From the NCBI GenBank assembly GCA_965112735.1, contig OZ218952.1, forward strand, positions 434,001-498,000: 64,000 nt of DNA, in the 5' to 3' direction. The position numbers and the translations under genes were made by a program. The notes beneath the pieces were generated by a model. That model was not told the origin of the DNA and made no database searches. It was given only the letters and a program-made list of their open reading frames with translations. The DNA is from Phaeosaccion multiseriatum (lineage: Eukaryota; Protista; Ochrophyta, other classes). Of this stretch, positions 140 through 58,777 are shown piece after piece; positions within the stretch are counted from its first letter, which is position 1, and the number at the start of each line of letters is the position of its first letter.

Positions 140-3100
140 ATCCGCGAACTGAAGGCCTTGCGTGACTCGCTGCACGAGGAGCTACGCGAGTGTCGAGAGA
201 GTGCCCGTTCGGACTTTGACGGGAAGCTCAGCCAGGAAGTGGCGAGGATCAGCAACCAGAGCAACAAGGAACTGGTGAGAGATGCATAGCATGTTGTATA
301 GTATATATATATATATGTGTGTGTGTGTATTATGTGTTTGTGTGTATATGGAGGGAGGAGAGAGAAGGTGGGATGAGTAGTGTGATGAGGACGAACCAAA
401 TGGAAACACTATGCTCTCTGTTTGCTGAAGAGGAGGAGGAGGAGGAGAGAAAGTTCCGTTTTTGTTTTTTTTTGCTTCGACGAGCCCGATTCACACTCCC
501 TCAAAGTCTCTCTCGTCTGCCTCCCGCACCTCTCCCCCCCGGCCTCTTGCCTCTCTCTCTCACTGGATGCCTCTCTCTCTCACTGCATGGCTCTCTCTCT
601 CTCACTGCATGCCTCTCTCTCTCTCTCTCTGGATGCACACACAGGCCGAGATCCGCGTGAGCAGCAGAGAGGTGTACGAGAGAGAGAACAGGGTGCTGCG
701 AGAGGGTCGCCAGGAGGCACTGGCAGAGACGCAGAGGTTGAGGGAGCAGCTCGCCAGCCTCTCCTCTTCGCATGAGGACCTTATTATGCGAGTCGCTAAG
801 GTAAAATGGGTGTTCGATTTTGGTGTTGGATATGTTCCATATTGTTGGTTTGGTCGATTTCGTCCTTCTTCCTGTTCGATTTTCGATATTTGTTGACCTG
901 CCCTCCTCTCGCATGAGAGTGGCTAAGGTAGGGTGGGGTAGGGTAGGGTGGGGTGGGGTGGGGTGAGGCGGGGTGGGGTGGGGCAGTGGCTCGGAAGTGC
1001 GTGGTGCATCTCTTGCTTATCGGTCCGGGCTCACTCGACAGCCACTCGCCTCACCCGGCTGTCTATCTATCTGTCTGCCTTTCTGCTTGTCTTTCTGTCT
1101 GCCTGTCTGTCTTCGTACATACCTTGTCTTGTTTTACCCACCCACCTACCCTACCCACCCACCCACCCACCCACCTACCCTAACCTACCCACCCCACCCA
1201 CCCACCTACCCTAACCTACCCTACCCACCCACCCACCTACCCTACCTACCCACCTACCCACCTACCCTACCCACCTACCCACCTACTCTACCCACCTACC
1301 CACCCACCTACCCTACCCTACCCACCCCACCCCACAACAGACGGAGGCTGCTCACGAGTCCGCGATGGGTGAGGTGCGATCAGAACTTCGCGTCAAGACC
1401 TTTGAACTGAGCCAGTTGGGGGTGTCGTTGGAGACGAGCAGCAGCAGCATGAGGAAGACAAAGCTTGAGGCAGACATGCTCAGGGAACAAGTCGAGGTGA
1501 GTTGATCACGCACTCACACACACACTTTCTTTGGCCGTCTGCCTTCGGCTGCACCCCCCCCCCCGCCGCGCATGGCTGTTGCTTGCATGCCTGCTAGCTT
1601 TCTTTGCTTGCTGGCTTCGCCTCCTTGCTTGCTTGCTTGCTTGCTTGTTGGCTTGCTGACTCCTTGCTTTGCTCACTTGCGTCCTTTACTTCCCCCGTTA
1701 CTTTCCTTTGCCTTCTTTTCCCTTTCCTTCTCTTCCCTTCGTGCTTCCTTTCCTCTCTTCGCTTCCTCCTTTGTTCCTTCCCTTCCCTTCCCTTCTCTTC
1801 TCTTCTCTTCGCTTCGCCACCTCCCCTCCAGGCCCACCGTGTGGAGTTCCTCAAGCTTCAAGCCGCCTCGGACAGGCAGCTTAGCGAGTTGCAAATCACA
1901 CTCGAGCACGAGAGAGCAAAGGTCAAGACCTTTGAGGAGCTCGAGTTGGAGCTGGACAGCGCTGTGGTCAGGGCAGGCCAGCACCTGGGGGAGGAGGGGG
2001 GAGGAGGAGCAGGAGAAGGAGGAGGAGGTGGTGGTGGCGGTGGTGGTGGTGGTGGAGGTCCAGTCGGACTGGGAATGGCAATGGATGTAGTGCCGACGTC
2101 TTCGCATCGGAGGGTGCGGCAGGCCATCTGCCTCGCGCATAAGCTCCTGCAGAAGGAGGGGGAGCTCGAGGACTGCAGCAAGAGACTCAAGGCTCAGCTC
2201 CAGCGGTGTGTATGTGTGCATGTGTGTGTGTGTGCGTGTGTGCGTGTGTGTAGGTGCGTCTGAGTCTGCTCACTCCCAACTAAGTCACACGACTTGATGA
2301 CTTACTTGTGTCCAGCCCCTGATGGCGCTACTCTCCTCTCTCTCTCTGCTCTGATAGGAACTCTGAACTGGAGAAGCGTGCCGCACACGTGGAACGTCAG
2401 CTCGGAAACGCAAAGCAGCCCACCAAGTACATGGTACGATAAGGGAGGGAAGGGACGTGTCCCATTGAGAGGGTAGGGTAGGGTAGGGTAGGGGAGGGAG
2501 GGAGGGAAGGAGGGAGGGAAGGAGAGAGTGGGAAAGGGGGAGGAAGGGATGGAGAGGGATGGGGGGTGTGAGAGAGAGGGGGGGGGGAGAGGGATGAGAG
2601 AGGGTGGCGGAGGGAGGGACAGAAGAGGGAGAGGGATGGGGAGAGGGGGGAGAAGGGAGGAACAGAGGGAGATGGTGCGCCAATCGAGATGTGCCTGGCC
2701 ACCCATACGCCTGCACATAGACCTACCTGCCCATGTGTCTGCCCTTCCCGTATAACCAACTCCCCCCTCCGGTCACAGGTGGACACAATTCGAGACCGAG
2801 AAGGCGAGATTGAAGCGCTCAAGGCCCAGCGAGAGAGGCTGCAGAGTAAACTCGCGCAACAGCAGCAAGCCAAAAGGTGAGACCCGCTCCCGCACCCCTT
2901 TCTCCATAGCCCAATAGTCCCCGTGTTGGTGCTTCGCCTCGTCGCCTACGAAGCCCGTTCCACATCATGCCTCTCCCTCCCTTAGGCGATTCCTATATTA
3001 TGCCAATACTCTTCCCCTCCCCCTCCCTCCCTTAGGCGATTCCTATATTACGTCAATACTCTTCCCCTCCCCCTCCCCCTCCCTCTCCGTCCTATCGAAA

Positions 3101-45012: not shown

Positions 45013-46344
45013 TTAGCGGCCCAGTGGGCAGCTCAAGCTGAGTACCTCTCTGCTATGCTTTCGCTTCTCCCTGTCCCTTCGCTCTGCCTCGACGCGAGCC
45101 ATTGTCTCGTGCTTCTTCTCCCGCTCCTCAATACCCAGCGCCAGAAACTTGCCCAGAAACTCCTCTCCGTCAATAACGCCATTGCCATCCCGATCAAAGG
45201 CCTTGTACAGCGCACAAAAGGCGGCGTCGTCGAGCACGACGGCAAAGGATAAGCGCAACTGATCACGAAAATCTGCAGGGCACAAGCTGCAGTGGAAAGA
45301 CCCCCGCACAGCCGTGCTCTCATGGGCGCAGCGGCCATTGAGCAGCTTGAGGGACTCTGCACGGATGGCAGACAGGCCCCGCTCCAGGTCCGTGCTGTCG
45401 CAGGGGGTGGCGAGAATCATGTCATTAATCGCTTCGACCTCCTGGCGAACCTTCTCCCCCTTTTCGTCTCTGCTCCGCCGCTGCCGCTCCCTGGCCGCGG
45501 CGTTCGCCTGTGCGTCTCTGTCTCGCTCTTCTCTCCCGAGCAACAGCAGCTGGTTCAGGAACAGGCGCCCGCTCACGTGCTCGCCGCCTTTGCGACACTC
45601 AAAGTGATCGACCACACTCTCTGTTTCCGCCTGCGTGAGGATGACACCGAAGAAGGACAGAAGCAGGTGTCGCAGCTGGCCAGAGGTGAGGCGCTTGTCG
45701 TAGAAGGCGTCGAAGGTGTGCGTGGTGGGGTCCATCACTTTGCTGTGCCGTGCCAGTTTGGCGAGCGCCGCGGCCCCCCCGTGCTGCTGCTGTGTCTGCC
45801 GCTGCTGTTGTTGTTGCTGCTGCTGCTGCAGCTGCAGCTTGCTATGGTCTCTGGAGATGCGGCTCGCGATGAGCGATCTCTGAACGTCGCGAAGGGCCGT
45901 AATGTCGTCGTAAGAGGAGTGGCACAGCTCCTCCAGTGTCCTGTTGGTCGTGTGCACGCTTGTGACGTTGTGGTGGGGGTCCGCGCTCCCCGGGGCGCCA
46001 TGCCCATACTCCCCCTCCTCCTGCCGCTGCCGCCGCTGTTGCTGCTCCTGCTGCCGATCCGCCAAGCGGCGCTTCTTGCTTGCGAACGTCGACTTGCTGC
46101 CCGCGGTGGAGCTCCGTGCCCAATGGAGTTGGGGAAGCAGTTTCTTTATCTGCGGGTCCGGCTGGTCACGCTTGTGGCTGGCCCGGCGGCTGTGCGCACC
46201 ACTGCTGGCACCGTAGGTCACGACTGCCGCCGCTTTGCTGAGCATTGGGAAGTGCCGGATTGCCTTGAAAGTATCGAGTCGGTCGTACGCGCCCTCTTCC
46301 CCGGATTCCTCGGGCCTAATTCCCCATTCCTCTCCATCGTTCAT
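45013..46344 (-). CDS. EF-hand domain protein
   Basis: Single long ORF with a canonical loop FDRDGNGVIDGEEF and a degenerate upstream pair (VVDHFECRKGGEHVSGRLF). The start was taken at the first ATG (MNDGEEW). Confidence 0.7.
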   Translation of the reverse strand: MNDGEEWGIRPEESGEEGAYDRLDTFKAIRHFPMLSKAAAVVTYGASSGAHSRRASHKRDQPDPQIKKLLPQLHWARSSTAGSKSTFASKKRRLADRQQEQQQRRQRQEEGEYGHGAPGSADPHHNVTSVHTTNRTLEELCHSSYDDITALRDVQRSLIASRISRDHSKLQLQQQQQQQQQRQTQQQHGGAAALAKLARHSKVMDPTTHTFDAFYDKRLTSGQLRHLLLSFFGVILTQAETESVVDHFECRKGGEHVSGRLFLNQLLLLGREERDRDAQANAAARERQRRSRDEKGEKVRQEVEAINDMILATPCDSTDLERGLSAIRAESLKLLNGRCAHESTAVRGSFHCSLCPADFRDQLRLSFAVVLDDAAFCALYKAFDRDGNGVIDGEEFLGKFLALGIEEREKKHETMARVEAERRDREKRKHSREVLSLSCPLGR

Positions 46345-46775
46345 TCCTCTTGCTCTCCTCGCTTCGCCGCCGCTAGTGCGGTAGTGCTCACTCGGGAGAT
46401 GTGGAAGGAGCTGCCACAAGCCCCCCAGTAGACAACCTTGTCTTGTACGCCCAACAAACAACAAAGGAATGCTTTTGGATGACGAGCCAAATTCCCCTTC
46501 GTGAGGTTTGCCTAAAGGAGCCTATCAGCAGCTTCACTTGCACAGAGAACTCTGCACGTGATAGGCTCACAGTCGAGCTGAGGACCCTCTTCCAAAGTCC
46601 TTGTGCTCGCTCGGTTTGTTCGTTTGTCTGTTCTGTAGGACTGCTTAGAGCCGGCTGGAAAAAAAAAAACCTCAAAAACCTCAAGTGACTAAACACCAAC
46701 CTGAAACTGAAACTGGTTCAGATGGCGACGAGACGGATGAAAAATGCTCGAAGAAGCGGTTAAAAAAAAAATACG

Positions 46776-49700
46776 ATGAATGGAGGCAGCAGTAGCGATG
46801 GCTTCCTTTGGAGAACCGGTAGCAGTATGACAAGTGAGAGGAGAAGGAGGAGGAGGAGGAGGAGGAGGAGGAGGGAATCTGTGCAAGCAGCCGCCTTGGT
46901 CTTCCTCCTCTCGCATCGCTATGCCCAAGCCCGATGCCCGAACTGGTGCTCCCAGCACGGCATCTGCACGGGACCAGGGGACGATGCCTTCTGTATATGC
47001 GAGATGGGCTACCAAGACGATGACTGCAAAAAACGTGAGAAGCCTGGACGCGAGAGGAGGAGGGAGGAGGGAGGAGGGGTTGGGGGAGAATCAGTGAACG
47101 GATGTACAACATCTTTTAAATTCCCCCACGCAACTGACTGCTGCTGCTTTGCTGCTCCTAGCGACGAGCGCTCTGTGCAATCTATTATGACCTCCTCCTC
47201 TTCCTCCTCCCTCGGCGTCCCGGTCTCTGCTCAGGCATGTGCCCCAAAGGCGACGATCCCTTGACGGTGGGGCAGAACGAACGGAGCATCATCCTCACCA
47301 CCGGCGCCAAGGGCGGCCTCCTCGACGGCACGCTCACCTTCACCTTCCACGGGGAGAGCGTGCAGCTCCCGGCCAACGGGAACGCTCTCCTGGGGGCGGG
47401 ATGCAGTCAGCGGATCACCTCCTTGCCCAACGTTGAGCTGGCCACCTGCAAGCAGACCGGGGCAGTGGACGAGCGCAACGGGGTGGAGCTGGAGATTACC
47501 TTCCACTCCTTCCCCACCACGCCTTGGGAGAACAACCTGTACTCCCACGACGGTAACCCGCCCCTGTCCAGCTTCTCGTGCGAGTTTCTGGAGGTGACAG
47601 GAAGTGCCATCCACCCTTCCTGCACGCTCACAGATGGCGAAACGTCCAATCTCAAGGAGTATACCGAGTGCTCCAAGCACGGTAACTGCAACCGCGCGAT
47701 GGGAACCTGTGATTGCAGCCTGGGCTTCCACGGAGCGGCGTGCGACGACACCGCTGACCGAGACGACGTGCACGTGAGCATCGCAGAGGGGCCCTTCTTC
47801 AGCGGTAGCATGGTCAAGCTACGAGCCAACAGAGGCGTGTCTGAGGAATACGACTTTATGAAAGCCATCGCAGGCACTAGTGAGCTCATGCGCCTCAGCG
47901 GGGAAGGTCACTTAAGCCTTCTGGGCAAGCTTTCGGTCAGCAGCGGGGGCCCCGGTGGTCGTGGTGGTTCTACTTCCACCACCACGATTGATGCTGCGGG
48001 AGTGGCAGTGGAGGGAGGGGCAGTTGCGGCAGAGGCTTTGGTGGTTAACACCACCGCAGAGGCGCTGCATCGGGTAGCGGGGGCGGCGGCGGCAGGACTG
48101 GACGTATCCGTTGAGCATTTGCTCGCTGGGGACACGCTGGTTAGACTGCAGAGCTCGGGGGCGAACGCAAAGGGCGGCTTGACTGTCTATGGAGACGGAA
48201 GCACGAGCATCGAAGGAGCAGGAGGCTTATTGCTCACCGAAGGGTCGCTCCGCGTCAGGGAAGGAGATGTTGAAGTGGGCGGTGGGGTGGCCATTGGGGG
48301 CAAACTTCAAATTGGTCCACAGGGGCTGTCAGTAGCCTCGTCATCATCAGTAGCATCCTTATCGTTGACCCAGGGTGGTGGCGGTATGACGACTGCGGGG
48401 GTGGGCGGCAAGAGCGAGGGCAGGGAGGACGCGACTATTCTCCCGGGCCGTCTTGAAGTGACGAGAGACGCCACACCTCAAGCCAAGGACGGGGGGGGCA
48501 GGGCGGGGGGGAGAGGAGGAGGAGGAGGAGGGGTGGTGGCGGAGGAGACGGCTGTGGCGTCTCTGGTAGTGGACAATGCTGAGCATTTTGAGGGGAGCGT
48601 GCTGCAGCTAAGCCTTAGGGGCCAAACGACGGTGGACTCCCCTGCACGCCTCGTCAGCGCCCTGTCCACAGAGGGCGCGGAGGTGTTTTCTGTAACCGCC
48701 AATGGGCAGACTGCGGTGGGGAGGGGCGGCCTGCGCGTGCAGGCCGGAGGGGTGCAAGTAGAGGCAGGGGGGCTGGAAGTGCACAGTGGGGGGCTGAGGG
48801 TGGAGGGCGGCATCGCGTTACAGAGCGGGGGCATGGTCTTTGCCAGCGAGGAGGGGCTGCGAGTGGACGAGGGAGGTGAGTGAGTGAGTGAGTGAGTGAG
48901 TGAGTGAGTGAGTGAGTGAGTGAGAGTGAGGAAAGCGTCAACTCTCTCCTGGAGTGAGAGGGAGGAAAAGGTCACTCCCTCCCTCCCTCACGCCTCACTC
49001 TCTCCCTCCCTCACTCCCTCCCTCCCTCCCTCACTCCTCATTCTCTCCCTCCCTCACTCCTCCCTTCCCTCCCTCCCTCCCTCCCTCCCTCGCTCCCCTT
49101 CCCCACACACAGGCCTCGTGACCAAGAGCACCGACTCCTCCCACCCCACTCTCTCTGCCGCTTCCTTGCACCCATCCTTCTGCGGTTCCGTCTTATCCCT
49201 CTCTGCCGAGGCACCTCCATCCCCCTCCTTCTCCTTTCTCGAGGCAGCAGGCAGTGGGGGAGAAGTGGTCTTTGAAATTGATGGCGAGGGAAGGGTCACT
49301 GCTCAAGGAGGGCTGTTCGCTGGTACGTGTGTGTGTGTGTGTGTGTGTATGTGTGCGTACGTGCGTACGTGCGTGTATATATATATACGTATGTGCATGT
49401 GTATGAGTGTATGTATGGAACAAACGTGAGTGACTCCATCTGCTCTCCCTCTCTCTCAGGACCTGGGGGGGTGCGGGTGGAGGGCTCCATCTCTGCCACA
49501 AGCGGTGCCTTGTCCTTCGGCAGGAGCGAGCTTCAGGCCGGAGAAGAAGACATGATCCTCCCCCTGCAACAGACCACCTTCGCATTCGTTAGGAGCGACG
49601 GGCGCAGAGGGTCAACCAACCGCATCGTCTTGGACGGCACAGTAAGTTTCAGGTTCAGCTTATTGGACCTTATCATCTCTCCCCCCCTCCCTCACCCACT

Positions 49701-52031
49701 CACTCCCTTCCTCCCTCACTCACTCCCTCCCTTCCTCCCCTCCTTCCTCCCTCCCACGCTCCCTCCCTCCCTCACCCACTCACCCACTCACCCACTCACC
49801 CACTCACCCACTCCCTCCCTCCCTACCCCCCTCCCTCCCTCTCTCACCCCCTTCTTCCCTCCCTCCCTCACCCTACCTTCTCCCTCCCTCCCTCACCCTA
49901 CCTTCTCCCTCCCTCCCTCCACCCCCCCAACAGCCCTCCGTGGGGCAGCTTCTCATCCTGCACAACTCCGACGACGATGCCACTTCCGGCCCCCACCTGC
50001 CCCCCATACCTCCCTCCTATAGCGTTGTAATGGTCTTTGATGGCGACGACTGGCAGAGCACCAACGTCCTTAGCGCGGATGTAACAGCTCTGGACGGAGT
50101 CACGCAGTTGCGGGCGGCCAAAGATCTGGATATTGGGAACTTTAGTCTACGGGCGGAGCACTTGCTGGCGGGTACGGCGTGGAGGGAGGGAGGGAGGGAG
50201 GGGAGGGAGTAGGATGTAAGGTTTTATCTTGCCCTGCTCACACCACTTGTCATTGCTTCTTGCTCTTGCCTCTGCTCCCTCCCTCCCTCCCTCTGTGAAG
50301 GCTCGAACCCCAGCGGACATGTCGCCGTTTACGGAGGAGGAGGCCTCCTTACCTCGCACTCGGGCCTGCTGTGGGATGGAAAGACATTGCAAGCTAGCAA
50401 CATCAAGGTTAGGCAAATCTAATCGAAGGAGAAGGAGATGAAACGGCATCGCAGGGTAGGAGAGGGAGGGAGGGGAGAGGGATGGCAGCACACTGTTGCT
50501 GTGAGAGGGAAAGTGAGGCAGGCAGACCCCCGTCGAGAGGGTGGGGGGGGGGGGGGGGGGGCTGGCCACGGTTGCTCCATGATGGGATGGTACGGCGGTG
50601 CAACCTTCCCTACCTTCCCCTCCTGCCCTGCTTACACACAAGCACGCACGTACCTATCCGCCCGTACCAAAGGCTAGCGAGGCAAACGTGGAGCAGCTGG
50701 AGACGCGGAAGCTCTCCGTGACAGGTGAGGCCGGGCTAGGTACCAGGTGTCAGTCAGTCAGTCAGTCAGTTAGTTAGGAAGGAAGGAACGAAGAAAGGAC
50801 GGAAGGAAGGAAGGAAGGAAGGAAGGAAGGAAGGAAGGAAGGAAGGAAGGAAGGAAGGAAGGAAGGAAGGAAGAAAGGAAGGAAGATAGAACGGAAGACA
50901 GAACGGAAGGAAGGGAGGTAGAAAGGAAGGACGGCTTAATCTTGTCGTGGGAGCGCAAAGGCGTGACGGTGTTGTGGGACGCTTCACCGTGGCACGTTAA
51001 AGCTCACCCTCGACCTCTTCGCGACCTCCATGGGAGCTCTCTGACTGACCGACTGGCTGACTGAGCGTGTTGATTGCTCTCCCTCCCCCCCCCCCTCTCT
51101 CTCCCCCCCTCGCACTCCTTCTCTCCCTCCTTTCTTCCCTCCTTCCCTCTCTCCCTCCCTCCCTTCCTCCCTCCCTCTCTCCCTCTCTCCCTCCCTCCCT
51201 CCCTCCCTCCCTCTCTCTCTCACTCCCTGCCTGCCCCCGACGCAACCCCAACAGGCCAGCTGGAGGTGAAGGGCGGGGCAGGCATCTCCAGCACAACAGG
51301 ACCTGTGCAAGGGCACGGCCCCTACCTCGACAGCACCTGCAGCAGCAAGCAGGCGCTCATAGGCGTGGAGGCCCTCGACTCACAGACGGCACTGGAGACA
51401 GTGTCTAGGCTGCAGGGGGTGGTGTTCCAGCCAACAGGAGGGAGCAGCAGCAGTCATATGGGCAGTAGGAAGAGAGTGGGGCTAGAACCAGCGGAGGTGG
51501 AGCTAGTGATGAAGGTGTGTGTGTATGTGTGTGTGCGTGTGTGAGTGGGTGTGTATGTGTGGGCGTGTGTGCGTGTGTGTGCGTGTGTGCGTGTGTGTGT
51601 ATGTGTGGGTGGGTGTGGGCGTGTGTGTGTGCGTGTGTAAGTGTATGTGTGTATAGGTGTGTGCGTGTGTGTGTGTGTGTGTGCGTGTGTGTGTGTGTGC
51701 GTGTGTGAGTGTATGTGTGTGTGTAGTATGATACACATGAATGTGTGCGCAGTCTCAGGGGGGGTGTGGGGCGGAGTGAGTGGGGTGAGTGAAGCGGGGC
51801 TACTGAGGAGTGAAACAAATACATACTGAACCTGGACAAGAGGCGGAGATGAGTCCATAGCGCACGCACATGGTGATGAAACAACCCTCCCCTCGCATCT
51901 TGCTCACTCTCTCTCTCTCTCCCCTTCCCTCTTCTGCTCTCTCCTTCCCTCTCCTCTCTCTCCATCTATCTGGCCTATCTCTCTCTCCCTCTCCCTCCCT
52001 CCCTCCCTCCCTCCATCCCTCCATCCCTCCC

Positions 52032-52080
<49 letters not shown>

Positions 52081-52336
52081 CCTGCTCTGCCTGTGCCCTC
52101 TACAGGAGCTAACAGTAGAGGCCAGATCGGGAGGCACGCATACTGTCGACTCCGCCCTTGTAGCGCTACTCATCGAGTCCAGCAAGGCGTTACAGAAAGC
52201 CTCTGAGGGGCTGCAGCAGCAAGTAAACGCCCTCGAAGCCAAGCTCGAAGGCGTGGAGAGGGAGCTGAGAGAGGTTAGGACACAGCAGGCCAAGAAGGCA
52301 GCTGATGGCACCGATGGCAGTGGCGAGGAGTTATGA
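46776..52336 (+). CDS. Secreted EGF-like / Gly-rich beta-repeat fibre protein with C-terminal peptidase-S74-like (intramolecular chaperone) domain and coiled coil
   Basis: About 9 exons (46776-47034, 47235-48876, 49112-49323, 49461-49640, 49934-50171, 50301-50408, ~50673-50745, 51255-51514, 52106-52336). EGF motifs [15 protein letters not shown]...DC, CPKGDDP and [27 protein letters not shown]-terminal [27 protein letters not shown]|[20 protein letters not shown] followed by heptads. Confidence 0.75.
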
Positions 52337-52826
52337 GGACCTCTTTTGTCTCTGGCCCCCAAAAGGCACAAGGCTCCATTTCTATCCTCCTTGCTAAGGC
52401 ACTCCTTCAGACAAAGCCTCTCGCAAACCCCTTGGAAGGAAGGAAGGAAGGAAGGAAGGAAGGAAGGAAGGTCTCGTTCGGCGTGAGCCGCCGCTGCCGG
52501 CTCGTAGAGCGCGTCTCTATACCTATATACATACATCATCGATATGTACATTTTTAAATTTACACCGTTCACATTTTGATTGCTTATCCTTTCTGCCCCT
52601 CCTCCTTAAATTAAGGTACGTAGGTACTTACAATATATTCTTCCTCGCCATTCCTCCCCATCCTCCTCCTCCTCCTCCTCCTTCCCCAAATGAAGCCGAG
52701 AACACATCTCTCACACCCTCACTTCCTTTCTTCCTCAGTTCCTCTCTCTTTTAGTCCCTCCGTTGCTCATATATATATATATATGGTCCTCAGTTGCTCA
52801 CTCTCTTTAGTCCCTCACACCTCACT

Positions 52827-55800
52827 TCAGCTGTTGTTCCACACCGAAGCTCCCTCCCTCAGTCGCTTTCGAAACACAACCCATTGCGTGTTGGGGCGGA
52901 CAGGGCGTGAGTAAAGAAGATCCAAGCTGCCGTACTCACTCCCAACCCCTCCCTTGTCGTCACCGCTGCTCCACACACTGCTGCTGCTGCTGCTGCTGCT
53001 GCAGTTGCTTGTCGCCAAAAGCACTTGCTCAACGTCCTCCCATCCTCGGCAAACGCCTCTGACAGCCGCTACCGTGGCCTCATTGGGAGAGAGACCGCTG
53101 TCCTTCATCTTCTTGAGTAGCTCCAGCGCCAGTGTCATCTGATGCGACAGACCACAGGCGGCGATGGCGTGGCTGTAGCTCGTCGTATCGGGCATCACCA
53201 CACCCCCTTGGGCACTGTCGCTGCTGAGGGAGGAGGCACTTGGTCCTGCAGCAGCCTCCCAAAGGGAGCCAAAGCGGGCAAGAACCCTTTTGACCCCCTC
53301 CTCCTTCTCCTCCTCCTGCGCTGCCCACCCGCTCTCTTCCCCTTCATTCACATGGGGACGTTGATGCTGCTGCTGCTGCTGCTGCTGCTGATCCTCCCCG
53401 TTCATCATCGCCAAGATTCGCTTGGCCAGCGCATAGTCCCCCTGTACCCCACATACCGAGAGAGCAAGGTTGTAGCACAGCAGGTTCGGCTTGACGCCCC
53501 CCCCTCCTCCTTCTCCTCCTCCTCCCACGCGCATGTCATGCAACAGCACGTTCAACACCGTCGAGAAGTCTCCCTCTCTGTAAGCCGCCGCCATGACAGT
53601 TTGGTACGTTCGGAGGTTGGGCGTGATGCCGCCCTGCTTCTCCATTCGATGCCAAAGGCGCAGAGCGGAGCATTGTCCTTCCGCTCCATCGCTGCTGCTG
53701 CTGCTGCTGCTGCTGCTACTGCAGGTTTCCAGCGCCTCGTTGATGAGTGAAATATCTGGAGTAAGCCCTTTCTCCTGTAACGAAACAACATGGCACCATG
53801 TGCAAGAGACTTGAGCGAGTGACAAGGGGCTGTCCACAGCAGAAAACAAACAAACACAGTATCAGTCTCCATCACCATATGCTTCTCACATGCATTGTAG
53901 CGAGCAGGTCCGTGACATCATCCCACTTTTTGGCCTTGACGCAAGACGCCAGGCCCCCGCGGAAGCTACCCATTGAGAGTTGGGGGGGGGGGGGGGTGGC
54001 CCAAGGAGATGAAGGAGGGGATGGGGGGGAGTGAGGCGTTGCGTGCGGAGGGAGGGGGCAACCAGTTTGATAGGTTGAGAAAGTGGGGGGGGGGGGGGGG
54101 GTCTCTAGGTTGAGAAAAGTGTGGCAAAGGAACATAGAAAACAATAAACATGGTCTCCCAGCGTGTAGACCGACTGGAGCTCAAATCCGTTGTACCACCA
54201 ACTAACCTAACTAACAAATGACATACTCACAAAGCAAAGCCCCCCTTCCTCACCTGCGAGTGCTCAACTCGAGGCCCAAGTCCTCCATGCGGCGCAACAA
54301 GACCAGTGCCTCCTCACAGCGACTCGCTTCTTGCCCGCAGAGCGCCAGGCAGTCGTTGTACATCCCGCTGCGCGTCATCAGAACGCCCAAAGCATCAGTA
54401 TCATTGCCGCTCTGCATCTGCTGTACCACCAACTGCTGCTGTTGCTCATCCACCAAGGCCTCCACTTCCTCGAGTATCTCGAGGGCCTGAGGAAAGTCCC
54501 CTGTACGTCGGCAAGCGCACATTGCTGCCTCGTACGCCACCATGTCGAGGCGGAACCCCTTTTCCCTCCTTGCTGTGCTGAACAAGGCCAGCACTTGCTC
54601 GTCGAGCTGCCTCTCCTGCTGCCTACCCTTCGCCAACGTCGTCACTGCTGCTGCTGCTGCTGCTGCTGAAGAAGAGGAAGAACCTTTTTCTTCTCCTCCT
54701 CCTGAAGGGGGCCTGGCTCCTCCCTCCTGCAACCGCTGCACTCTGCGGCAACACTGCAGAGCCGCGTTGAAGCCCTGTGCCGTCAGGGTCGAGGTCAGTC
54801 CCCTCTCCTGCACCTCCTCCACGAGTAAGAGAACGGTCAGAGTCAGGTCCATCACCCTGCTGCAATTCTCGTCCTGCTGTATCACCAACTGCTCCGGCTG
54901 CTGCTGCTGCCCCTTCACCCTCAGCTGCGGCCCGAGCGCCTCTATGGCAGCATTGAGGGCCGCGGAGGACGGCTCGAAGCCCTTCTGCCTCATTATCCTC
55001 ATCATTTCCAGACACTCTCCGGCGATGGTCGCCTCCTGACTACTTCCCGCTCTGCTCCTCCAGCTAAAGGACGAAGCGCTGAGGCTGCTGCTGCGACTCA
55101 GCGCTTCTTCGGTCTCGCACTTTACCGCACTGCACAGAATGCAAACAACCGCGTTGAAAGTTGCTTCGTCAAAAGAGCTGAGCCACTCATGCCTCTCGCT
55201 CTCGCTCTCCCTCTGTCCCTCCTGCCCACCCAACAGCGTCTCCTTCCTCCTTCCACGTGTCTGCAGCTCTCTGAGCAACCTCAGTCCTTCTTCTCGGTAT
55301 CCCCTGCGCGGGGCCCTTCCCACTTCCTCCTGCTTCTCGTCCTTCTGCTCAGAATCGGACACCGACTCCATCCCTGCTGTGGCTCCTGCTCCTGCTCCTG
55401 TTGCTCCCGTTGCCTCTGCTTCTGCTACTTGCTTTGCTGTAATGGCCGCACATGCCCGAAGGCCCGCACGAAGGCTCTCTTCATCGCGATGCATCTACAT
55501 TGGAAAAAGAAGTAGAGGAGGAGGATTACACACAAGGAGGCACCGAGAGTTGCTAAAAGAAAACTACAACATTCCTTCCTCCCTCCCTTTCCCCCCGCCC
55601 CTCTCCTCCCCCCCTCCCCTTCCCTCTTTCCTCCTTTCTTCCCCTTCCTTCCCTTCTTTCTTCCTCCCTTCCTTCTCTCCTTCCTCTCTTGCGTACCTGT
55701 CTCCCAACCATCTCCTCCAAGAGACGAAGTGCCTCCTCATGCGCTTCCAGCAGCCCACAGCAGCGCACAGCCACATTCCACGACAGCGCCGCTGCTGCAG

Positions 55801-56770
55801 CGGGCTGAGCCCCCCTCTCCTCCCTCTCCCCCCGCTGGCCATACACCTCCTTCTCCTCCTCCTCTCGCTGCTGTTCCTGGAACAGCTCCAATGCTTGCCT
55901 CGGTTCCCCCGCCGCAGATAAGCTCTCCATGGCCACATTCAAAGCCGCGGTTGCTTCAGAGTCTGAGATGCACACACGACTGCTGCTGCTGCTCCTCCTC
56001 TTCTTCTCCTGGACTTCCTTGTACAAACGTAGGACAGTGTTTACATTGTCTCCTCCTCCCCTGCGGCGGCAAGCGTCCATGGCAAAGACATAGCTGCTTC
56101 CCGTCGCGAGTGACTTAGCACCGCCATCATCATCAACATTACCCTCACCCTCGCCGCTTCCCTCCGCCACAGCCGCTGCAAGAAGCGCACGAATGGTGCC
56201 CACCATCGTCGTCGGAGGGACTTCCTCATCCGCCGTCGCCAACCCTCCTTCTTCTTCTCCTTCTCCTCCTCCTGTTACTCCGAGCAACTCGTCCTTGCGC
56301 TGAAGCAGGCTGTCTCCCCTCTTTAGACAGCACAGCACCCAATACGCCACCTCCGCCTCCCCGCCCGCCGCACACACCTGCAGGAGAGCGTTGTAGGTTC
56401 TGACGGTGAGAAAAGGAGTGGCGCCTCCGCCTCCGGAGGAGCTTCCGGGGGAGGAGGGCATTGCAACACCCTCCCTTGCTGAGGAGGGAATTGCACCACC
56501 ACCACCACTGTCCTCATTCGACTCAGCCCGAGCAGCCTCAATTTCAGTTTCAGTCTCAGCCTCCGTAAGAGGAGCAAGAGGAGCGGTGCCCGTGCCGAAT
56601 CGTTCAAAGTCATGCACAAGGAGAAGGGCCTTCTCGAGCGCGTCTGTCTTGCCCAAGGCACGAATCACAGTCACCAAAAGGTGCTCTGTCACCGCCACCA
56701 CCCCTTCTTGGGGAAACAATATCATCATCTCCTCCTCCCCATCCTCCGTTTCGGCATTCTGTATCACCAA

Positions 56771-56807
<37 letters not shown>

Positions 56808-58777
56808 TGATGTCGCTGCTGTCGCTGCACGGCCATCATCTCGAAAAGGACATCCACTGCGGCATCTGCCTTGCCTGCCTGCTCACAGCCCACTAGTAAA
56901 GTCGCAAACGTATCCTGCAGAAGACGAGCACCACCTTCGCCACTACTGTATCCGTCGCCGTCGCCAACGCTAGTAGGATGATGATCATCCCCCGAGCCAT
57001 CTGCGCCCGCCCCCACCGCCTCCCCCCAGCAATCCTCCTCTTCCTGCCACCTCGTCTTGTCCTCCTTAAGACTATCCCACAGTCCCAGCGCTGCCTCCAC
57101 CTCTCCTGCCAAGGCATAGGCTTGGATAGCAGCGTGATACGACCTCAGCTGCTGCGTCCTTAGCAGCAGTGCCAGTTGCCTCCTCCTCCTGCTCCCTCCC
57201 CCCTCCCCCCTACCCTTACCATACCCCTTCTGTAGTTCCTCCTGCTGCTGCGCATGCCCTGCCTGTAGCCTCACAAAGTAGCCCTCTGCCTCTCCCTCGC
57301 CGCCCTCGCCGAGGAGCGAGCACTCCCCAAGTCGTGCACATGCCTCTAGGGCCACCAGAAGGCTCTCCTCACCCGGCTCAAGTCCTAGGGCCTTCATTTG
57401 ACGCACCAATCGCAAAGCCTCCACACTGTCACCGCCTCGCCCGCACGCCTCGACCACAGGGTCGAAACAGAGCCGTGCCACAAGATCCGGATGCGGAAAG
57501 TCGTCTCCTTGCTGCTGCGCATCATCCTGCTGGTCCTTATGCTGCCATCTCCCTGTAGCGAGCCTGTGGGTCGGGGTTGGGTACGTACCTGCACTTTCAT
57601 CCCCATCGTTCCCCCCCTCGTTGTAACCGGTGTAACCGTCGTCTCGCTGAAGAAGGGCCATGAGGATCTCTTCCAGGTCCTGGGCAAGCCTGCCCAACAG
57701 CAGCACCGCCTTCTTGCGCTCACCAAGCCGCAAAAGACTCGCTATACCCGCCCCATAGACCCGCACATCTGGTGAGATGGTCGTCTGGAAGCCCTGCTTC
57801 CTCAGCTCGTCCTCCTCCTTCTGCTCCTCGTGAAAGTGCTCCGACAATAACTCGAGCACCGCAACATCGTCACCCACGGAAGCAGCCTCAAGAATCATGG
57901 TTCCGTAGCTACCCCTTGTGGCACGGAGCCCCTTCTTTTTGAGCTCTGACAAGAGCTCGAGCGCCCAAGAGAGATGTCCAAGCGCACAGCTTGACTTGAT
58001 GGCAATGTTGATGCTGGTCTCACAAAGCATCAGACCATCACCATCACCACCACCACCACCGCCGCCGCCGCCGCCGCCACCGACCCCTCCTTCGACACCG
58101 TCACCGCCGCCGCCGCCGCCGCCGCTGCTGCTGCTGGCGCCTCCAAGGCCAAAGAGAATGGCTGCGATGTCGTTGTTCTGCTGTCGCCGCGGCTGCTGCT
58201 CTCGGCGCCGCTCACTCACCTCAACTAAAAAGTTGAGAATTGAGAGGACAACGTCGTGTTGCCCCGCGGAAGAACAGAGCTCCATCACACGGCAAACACT
58301 GTCCTGCGACAAGTGACCGAGCCTGCCTGTCTCCCATATTTCGAGCCCGAGCTGCGCTCCGGAGAGCACCATAGGATTAAGGGTGGTGAGAAGGCAACCA
58401 TATACCCAACAGCAGCAACACATGGAGAGGAGCTGAGAAGGCAAAAGATGGCGTATTGCATTAGGAGACAACAACAAAACGCCCTTACGTAATGACCCAC
58501 CCAGCCCCAGCATCATATCGACAGAGACTGAGCATGACCTTGCAGCCATCCATCGGCAATGTGGCGCTACCCCTCCCTCCCCCCCTCCCCACTCCACTCC
58601 CCCGATTTAGCATCAGACCCCCCACATCCACCCACCTGACCCCCCAAATCCACCCACCTGGAGTGCAACTTGCTGAGAGTCTTCCACCGCAAAGCAAGCG
58701 TCCATCACAGCGGCCATTGCTCTCGCTATTCTCGCCGGCATGGTATTGCTGTTGCCGCCCTGTATCACCAACGGCTG

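Follow-up and report, generated by a model that had tools for sequence, protein, structure and literature searches.

Trimeric fibers chaperoned by a C-terminal S74/ICA domain are known from phages, from protist viruses and from one animal transcription factor. A locus of the ochrophyte Phaeosaccion multiseriatum raises the question of what such a device does at the end of a cellular, secreted protein that is headed by a piece of a flagellar-hair (mastigoneme) subunit. The locus occupies positions 46776-52336 on the forward strand of the window, the 64,000-nucleotide stretch that we analyzed (assembly GCA_965112735.1, contig OZ218952.1, positions 434,001 to 498,000). A first-pass annotation, made from the letters alone, had taken it for an intron-containing, domesticated phage-style fiber fused to a flagellar-hair module, with an S74 domain that trimerizes the chains and then cuts itself off. 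Our reading differs from this at the last step: one nine-exon gene would encode a secreted trimeric fiber with three mastigoneme-type heads, in which the S74-derived domain is kept as a permanent clamp. We give this reading a probability of roughly 60%.

Exons were found by translating positions 46600-52700 of the forward strand in three frames and joining the coding-like stretches, which are set apart by microsatellite-rich gaps, at GT..AG sites. The resulting gene (Table 1) has a product of 1013 residues, or 1014 if an alternative acceptor of exon 3 at 49248 adds one Ala. All eight introns (129-591 nt) are GT..AG, the phases agree at every joint, and the 3,042-nt open reading frame (ORF) has no internal stop. 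A metagenomic orthologue, P0001 (L001/L002), is a single uninterrupted ORF spanning the counterparts of window exons 1-6, which confirms the exon 5/6 joint, and a family S74 profile runs unbroken over the exon 6/7/8/9 joints of the spliced protein. Support for the gene model thus comes from the agreeing phases and from homology that extends over the joints. In order, the product comprises a signal-like N-terminus, an EGF module, a CPKGDDP domain, a second EGF module, beta modules, a beta-sandwich, a beta lead-in and, at the C-terminus, the S74/ICA domain with its coiled coil.

This order recurs in a protein family. The exon-2 product has 646 relatives with E<=1e-3; a C-terminal S74 domain is present in 47 of the 150 best head relatives, and in 42 of the 59 of those that are at least 800 residues long. 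The family plan (head, neck module, mid-domain and C-terminal S74-type domain, on one chain and in that order) is found in the window protein, and the same domain order is seen in L001/L002 and L003. Several relatives with both parts come from curated genome annotations. The nine in-phase exons, together with the 47 relatives that hold both parts in one protein, bear out the intron-containing single gene of the first-pass annotation: judged from its sequence, the locus is a single cellular gene with introns and does not fall into two.

Named relatives occur in Tribonema minus (41% identity), Pelagophyceae sp. CCMP2097, Epipyxis, Parmales, Aphanomyces, Saprolegnia, Phytophthora, Pythium and Globisporangium. 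All of these belong to the stramenopiles, as oomycetes, Tribonema, a pelagophyte, a chrysophyte and Parmales, and the family spans ochrophyte algae and oomycetes, plant and animal pathogens included. Further oomycete members carry EGF plus PF13884. Outside the family, the nearest S74 domains belong to bacterial "tail fiber domain-containing" proteins (~1e-14), followed by cyanophage and vibriophage tail fibers (~1e-6). Family members are annotated only as "hypothetical" or "EGF-like domain-containing", the protein atlas returned an EGF cluster only, without taxa, and our literature search found no paper describing the family or linking mastigoneme-type proteins to S74/ICA domains. A word search with the L003 ORF for shaft and S74 domain gave no matches. 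The Phytophthora parasitica zoospore membrane proteome table holds no entry of 1032 residues, the length of the P. nicotianae member P0189 (a weak negative), and no S74 or endosialidase terms were found in the membrane-proteome supplement. Within this stramenopile EGF head, shaft and S74 family, the window gene is by its domain content a short member with a decayed cleavage site.

The C-terminal domain and its cleavage site

A profile built from 36 S74 domains of head relatives matches the spliced window protein over residues 816-997 (54.2 bits, E 7.7e-19). A second profile (A2), which includes window exon 8, finds the ICA domains of 6F45 (1.6e-17) and MYRF (7DC3, 1.5e-16) in the PDB, and further matches 8JOV, 3GUD (8e-5) and 8HQZ. 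PF13884 is recognized in the downstream exons of L001/L002 (31-33 bits) and over the whole model in the L003 ORF that continues P0002 (52.6 bits); its cut-off is passed by nine of nine relatives tested and by the L003 ORF. The coiled coil listed separately in the first-pass annotation aligns with that of the relatives and of 6F45 and 7DC3, and is the C-terminal helix of the S74/ICA domain rather than a unit of its own. By profile homology, the window C-terminus is an S74/ICA-derived domain with coiled coil, much as that annotation had it.

The expected self-cleavage fares less well. In MyRF, S587A and K592A abolish cleavage, the double mutation Y615A+Y617A blocks it, and I637A, Q639A and R590A disturb it, R590A still cleaving, aberrantly; trimerization is driven chiefly by the triple coiled coil at the C-terminus (PMC8326128). 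Among our relatives, the Ser, Asp and Lys of the SDxRxK motif are invariant (47/47) and the Arg is kept in 43. In the window copy HMMER and MAFFT treat "TC" as an insertion and align S-S-K-Q-A-L to SDxRxK; in this preferred alignment Ser is kept, and Asp has become Ser, Arg Gln and Lys Leu. The conserved residues at the cutting hole, the Tyr pair and the G-x-I-A-Q-E-V strand, are likewise replaced: where relatives have V-x-Y-x-Y/W, the window has V-V-F-Q-P, with F and P at the Tyr positions. Because the preferred alignment lacks the dyad Lys and four neighboring determinants are replaced, self-cleavage is doubtful, and the window copy probably does not cut itself. The S74 domain still has its hydrophobic core pattern and its coiled coil, and a role as a trimerizing clamp is plausible.

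Head, shaft and mid-domain

The six best PDB matches of a head profile (A1) are the six chains of 9UFE (E 1e-10 to 1e-14), six protein species with the chain names "Tubular mastigoneme protein", OCM3, OCM5 and OCM6; generic EGF proteins follow at 6e-7, and the parts aligned to the 9UFE chains are the EGF modules. A longer homology runs by way of P0121, a 425-residue Phytophthora ramorum protein, which matches OCM5 over its residues 10-197 (E 3e-43) and is matched over residues 108-387 by residues 53-296 of the window head (E 1e-41). Alignment starts at about residue 108 in P0121 and at residue 110 in P0066 (441 residues); the window head has two EGF modules only and covers approximately the last two thirds of the 3-EGF proteins. 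The same short head is found in the closest S74-bearing relatives, P0010 and P0011. The mastigoneme-type head of the first-pass annotation therefore holds as to type and not as to completeness: by these alignments it is of OCM/Mas type, without the first two EGFs of those proteins.

Individual elements of the head were read much as before. The EGF modules and CPKGDDP are confirmed, with a Pfam EGF_2 match on the exon-2 product (E 5e-5, 24.0 bits, cut-off 22.1), and AlphaFold2 (AF2) run on a 48-row alignment gave pLDDT >90 for the head, residues 1-170 of the exon-2 product. The signal-like N-terminus also stands: its hydrophobic stretch and AQA site lie directly ahead of the first EGF, placed as in P0001 and P0002, which have an ordinary signal peptide there, followed by the same residues. 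A second in-frame ATG occurs at codon 18, still upstream of the 12-Arg tract. Foldseek of the exon-2 model found no strong match (TM ~0.14) among the PDB structures searched, which apparently did not include 9UFE. The PnMas1 antigen peptide (PMC12223298) was not found in any fetched relative, and P0169 or P0121 was not confirmed as the PnMas1 orthologue.

As a separate observation, the CPKGDDP domain superposes on residues 361-524 of the Mycobacteriophage Bxb1 tail-tip protein 9D93_Ma (Z 11.6, root-mean-square deviation 2.2 A over 105 residues), which Foldseek also ranks first, weakly. Its further structural matches are other phage structural proteins (Z 8.0, 7.3 and 6.5). On these models, the core domain of the mastigoneme-type subunit may share its fold with phage decoration or tail domains.

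In the shaft, the four "hairpin motifs" noticed earlier prove to be recurrences of one conserved family module of ~53 residues, in two full and two partial copies. The 7-residue Gly/Val periodicity is also real, with GGxxVxx units and a lag-7 autocorrelation over residues 560-660 of 0.34 for Gly and 0.24 for V/L/I/M/F. Both the modules and the GG repeats are found again in P0169, a Mas-like Phytophthora ramorum protein of 636 residues without S74. Since shaft modules and GG heptads are common to S74-less Mas-like proteins, they are of host (mastigoneme-protein) type and not of phage type, and we rejected a wholly phage-derived shaft on these grounds. The label "phage-style fiber" is thus apt for the S74/ICA end and for the tailspike-type sandwich described next, and inapt for much of the shaft.

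The mid-domain (residues 655-830) is conserved in more than 30 relatives, and in most of these its distance from the N-terminus is a near-constant 450-820 residues, at total lengths of 590-2,700 residues. We modeled it with AF2 on the orthologous segment P0001:605-790 plus 28 relatives, obtaining a core with pLDDT 82-95. This model superposes on the C-terminal beta-sandwich of the Acinetobacter-phage tailspike depolymerase 24QJ (Z 8.3, root-mean-square deviation 2.1 A, 78 residues; Foldseek probability 1.00, E 2.5e-3), other tailspike parts match it too, and the mid-domain stretch of P0001 has a weak Pfam Phage_depo_C match (E 0.051). Two agreeing weak signals, the structure match and Phage_depo_C, point weakly to a phage-tailspike-type beta-sandwich. 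In the window protein the S74 domain follows the mid-domain almost directly, where long relatives insert up to ~1,700 residues of shaft; on this comparison the window protein is the minimal version of the family.

The long members P0079, P0102, P0126 and P0123 reach 2,235-2,701 residues, their extra length lying between mid-domain and S74. Where the mid-domain was located in long members, e.g., in P0079 and P0065, it lies at approximately residues 580-820. In these proteins the N-terminal ~800 residues look like a constant base and the distal shaft like the variable part.

How the fiber would work, and what else the locus could be

By analogy with phage fibers and MYRF, the C-terminal ICA domain and triple coiled coil would gather three chains, and folding of the beta lead-in would be nucleated from the C-terminal end. 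The product would be a secreted trimeric fiber with three mastigoneme-type heads at the opposite end. Among the 47 relatives, the chaperone would afterwards be cut off at the intact Ser-Lys site; in the window copy, where other residues have taken the place of the cleavage motif and of the cutting hole, it would most likely remain on the chain as a permanent trimerizing clamp. Judging from its head, the fiber may dock onto mastigoneme subunits or assemble together with them.

Several observations weigh against this reading. Transcript support was sought in public sequencing runs, of which four matched, all from one sample and with genomic contigs only. When these contigs were aligned to 5,701 nt of the locus, one spanned 46882-48486 and read straight through intron 1; all apparent joints have sides of ~20 letters inside repeats and are therefore not splice evidence. 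The exon 8 sequence is identical across the four runs. Pfam reported no Peptidase_S74 in the separate exon-8 and exon-9 products even at E<=1. In the AF2 monomer model most of the shaft scores below pLDDT 60, which is compatible with oligomer-dependent folding and no proof of it. The 12-Arg tract is odd and absent from the relatives. Lastly, an alternative register of the cleavage motif, S-T-C-S-S-K, keeps Ser and Lys five apart, though not Asp or Arg, and fits the downstream hydrophobic pattern equally well.

This register is the basis for supposing that the window domain is still an active self-cleaving chaperone, working through Ser877 and Lys882, with a mature fiber that loses its C-terminal ~137 residues in the manner of phage fibers. 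The Ser-x4-Lys spacing is kept, a K-x-x-hydrophobic-x-x-hydrophobic pattern follows downstream, and the motif Arg is non-essential in MyRF, as the R590A mutant attests. However, both HMMER and MAFFT set a two-residue insertion before the Ser and a Leu at the dyad Lys, the Asp present in every relative is absent, and the Tyr pair and the I-A-Q positions by the cutting hole are replaced; we consider continued cleavage unlikely. Alternatively, the copy could be a decaying paralogue, an unprocessed young pseudogene in which loss of the S74 motif is one part of the decay. The conserved catalytic and neighboring residues are indeed lost in the window copy only, the poly-Arg N-terminus derives from a GGA/AGG microsatellite, and the public runs gave no expression signal. 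Against such decay, the ORF stays open over nine exons with eight canonical in-phase introns, and all EGF Cys are kept along with the S74 core pattern (54 bits against the family profile), which leaves a pseudogene quite improbable.

The origin and unity of the locus can be questioned as well. A division into two genes, with EGF modules and shaft in the 5' one and S74 in the 3' one, would suit the long introns of the 3' half (265-591 nt) and the fact that the public runs contain no transcript linking the parts, yet it has to contend with the 47 relatives in which both parts form one protein, several of them from curated annotations, with joints that are all in phase and with a family profile unbroken over exons 6-9; we regard it as very improbable. 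Scarcely credible is an endogenous fiber gene of a polinton-like or giant virus, even though polinton-like viruses that have integrated into the genomes of protists commonly have large modular fibers with Peptidase_S74 at the end (PMC12220804). Eight spliceosomal introns, full of microsatellites of the kind seen elsewhere in the window, interrupt the gene, its GC content matches that of its flanks, the Pfam matches among the few ORFs scanned were all to PPR and none to a viral family, and the N-terminal two thirds are a stramenopile cellular module. Moreover, S74 fibers were found in most polinton-like virus groups except those of ochrophytes (PMC12220804).

The clamped-fiber reading can be set beside systems already described. 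Phage ICA fibers (endosialidase endoNF, the GA-1 neck appendage 3GUD, the long tail fiber distal subunit 6F45 and the T5 L-shaped fiber 8HQZ) share with the window protein the C-terminal ICA domain with coiled coil, the beta lead-in directly upstream and a tailspike-type beta-sandwich. They differ in that the window gene is cellular, eukaryotic and carries introns, in having an N-terminal virion-binding domain where the window protein has an EGF/mastigoneme-type head, and in their cleavage motif, since SDxRxK is degenerate in the window copy. MYRF (7DC3) is likewise a eukaryotic cellular protein, whose trimers form through an ICA domain of phage origin and a triple coiled coil at the C-terminus, as proposed for the window protein. 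It is, however, a transcription factor of the endoplasmic reticulum membrane, whose cleavage frees a DNA-binding trimer, whereas the window protein has neither a DNA-binding nor a transmembrane part and is predicted to be a secreted, Cys-rich extracellular fiber.

Closest at the other end of the chain are OCM, SIG and PnMas (9UFE chains; PnMas1-3 of Phytophthora), which have a signal peptide and the same EGF type as the window head (ECSNRG-C-D..TG-C-C..G-F/Y-G..C). In both, a C-P-x-G motif after the EGF is followed by an alpha/beta domain, another EGF and a neck module, and both they and the window family are stramenopile-restricted. The window protein lacks the first ~100 residues (two EGFs) of these 3-4-EGF proteins and adds, beyond their plan, ~700 residues ending in the S74-derived domain. 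TLP-12 is a eukaryotic extracellular fibril of three chains; its candidate proteins, from alveolates, have at their end an ICA domain that is proposed to make the triple beta-helix fold (10.1101/2025.09.30.679562). These glycofibril candidates are ICA-ended like the window protein, but are dodecapeptide-repeat alveolate glycoproteins without an EGF/mastigoneme head. The fibers of polinton-like viruses are also long and modular, with a C-terminal Peptidase_S74, and are found within protist genomes (PMC12220804); they are encoded in viral elements and contain laminin-G, collagen or adenovirus-fiber modules, whereas the window gene belongs to the host, is rich in introns and encodes a host-type head.

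The family supplies named candidates for the fine filaments of tubular mastigonemes, whose components we did not find identified in the literature searched. A speculative proposal, unlikely as it stands, is that the S74-capped, mastigoneme-headed proteins are the thin (terminal and/or lateral) filaments of stramenopile tubular mastigonemes, with three heads that plug into the OCM/Mas tube lattice and a phage-style trimeric fiber that projects from it. The window copy would then be a specialized variant that keeps its clamp, for instance a cap, a base adaptor or a lateral filament of short length. An S74 profile matched none of the 9UFE chains, which implies that such fibers, if they are mastigoneme parts, are not among the deposited tube chains. 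In any case, the degenerate copy offers a natural test of whether a chaperone domain can still clamp trimers once self-cleavage is lost.

Feature coordinates and surroundings of the gene

Table 1. Exons and protein features of the nine-exon gene; positions are those of the window, residues those of the 1013-residue product.
Feature	Position	Strand	Residues	Remarks
Exon 1	46776-47034	+	1-86	Start (ATG at 46776), 12-Arg tract, signal-like stretch, EGF module 1
Exon 2	47235-48875	+	87-633	CPKGDDP domain, EGF module 2, neck, modules, heptads
Exon 3	49251-49322	+	634-657	Partial module with hairpin; L001 orthologue aligns over joint
Exon 4	49460-49641	+	658-718	Conserved mid-domain begins
Exon 5	49934-50171	+	719-797	Mid-domain core (including VFDGDDW), start of lead-in
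Exon 6	50301-50407	+	798-833	Lead-in strands; within family S74 profile alignment
Exon 7	50673-50724	+	834-850	Lead-in; phase-consistent GT..AG; inside profile alignment (residues 816-997)
Exon 8	51255-51514	+	851-937	N-terminal half of S74/ICA-derived domain
Exon 9	52106-52336	+	938-1013	C-terminal half of S74/ICA-derived domain, coiled coil; stop codon 52334-52336
12-Arg tract	46839-46874	+		AGG/GGA repeat between first ATG and signal-like stretch
Signal-like hydrophobic stretch (AAALVFLL) and AQA site	46887-46931	+	38-52	Directly before first EGF Cys
EGF module 1	46935-47033	+	54-86	Weak Pfam EGF match on exon-1 product
CPKGDDP alpha/beta domain	47237-47659	+	88-228	
CPKGDDP motif	47240-47260	+		Motif of alpha/beta domain
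EGF module 2	47660-47746	+	229-257	
Neck module	47792-47950	+	273-325	~53 residues, conserved in family, full copy
Partial module	48179-48250	+	402-425	
Second full module	48587-48751	+	538-592	
GGxxVxx heptad tract	48722-48871	+	583-632	~7-8 clean units
Partial module with hairpin	Exon 3 region	+	635-661	
Degenerate cleavage motif STCSSKQAL	51332-51358	+		Exon 8
G-L-E-P-A-E-V stretch	51479-51514	+		Exon 8; replaces G-F-I-A-Q-E-V-E..LP
Coiled coil	52175-52294	+	961-1000	Heptad-like helical tail

Five introns (48876-49250, 49323-49459, 49642-49933, 50725-51254 and 51515-52105) consist mostly of microsatellite, namely (GTGA)n, (TG)n and (CCCT/CTCC)n, and at every intron microsatellite the short-read contigs from the source sample are interrupted. 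The (GTGA)n tract directly at the exon-2 donor forms a ladder of alternative donors 4 nt apart. In L001, the closest relative, positions 699-3086 hold head, shaft and mid-domain without interruption, where the window gene has five introns, and the S74 part is interrupted by introns at other places than in the window gene; intron positions are thus not conserved in the EGF head, shaft and S74 family. L003 is an intron-poor and very GC-rich relative. At L003 8001-11542, P0002 (the head, 397 residues) and the next ORF (783 residues; shaft, mid-domain and intact S74) share 4 nt that are read in different frames; they probably belong to a single gene, divided by a frameshift or by an intron of very small size.

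Downstream of the gene, the minus-strand ORFs at 52827-53849, 54250-55494 and 55553-58597 have PPR matches, strong for the first and third and below the Pfam cut-off for the second. Upstream, a minus-strand ORF at 45013-46464 is Gln-rich, with no Pfam match.

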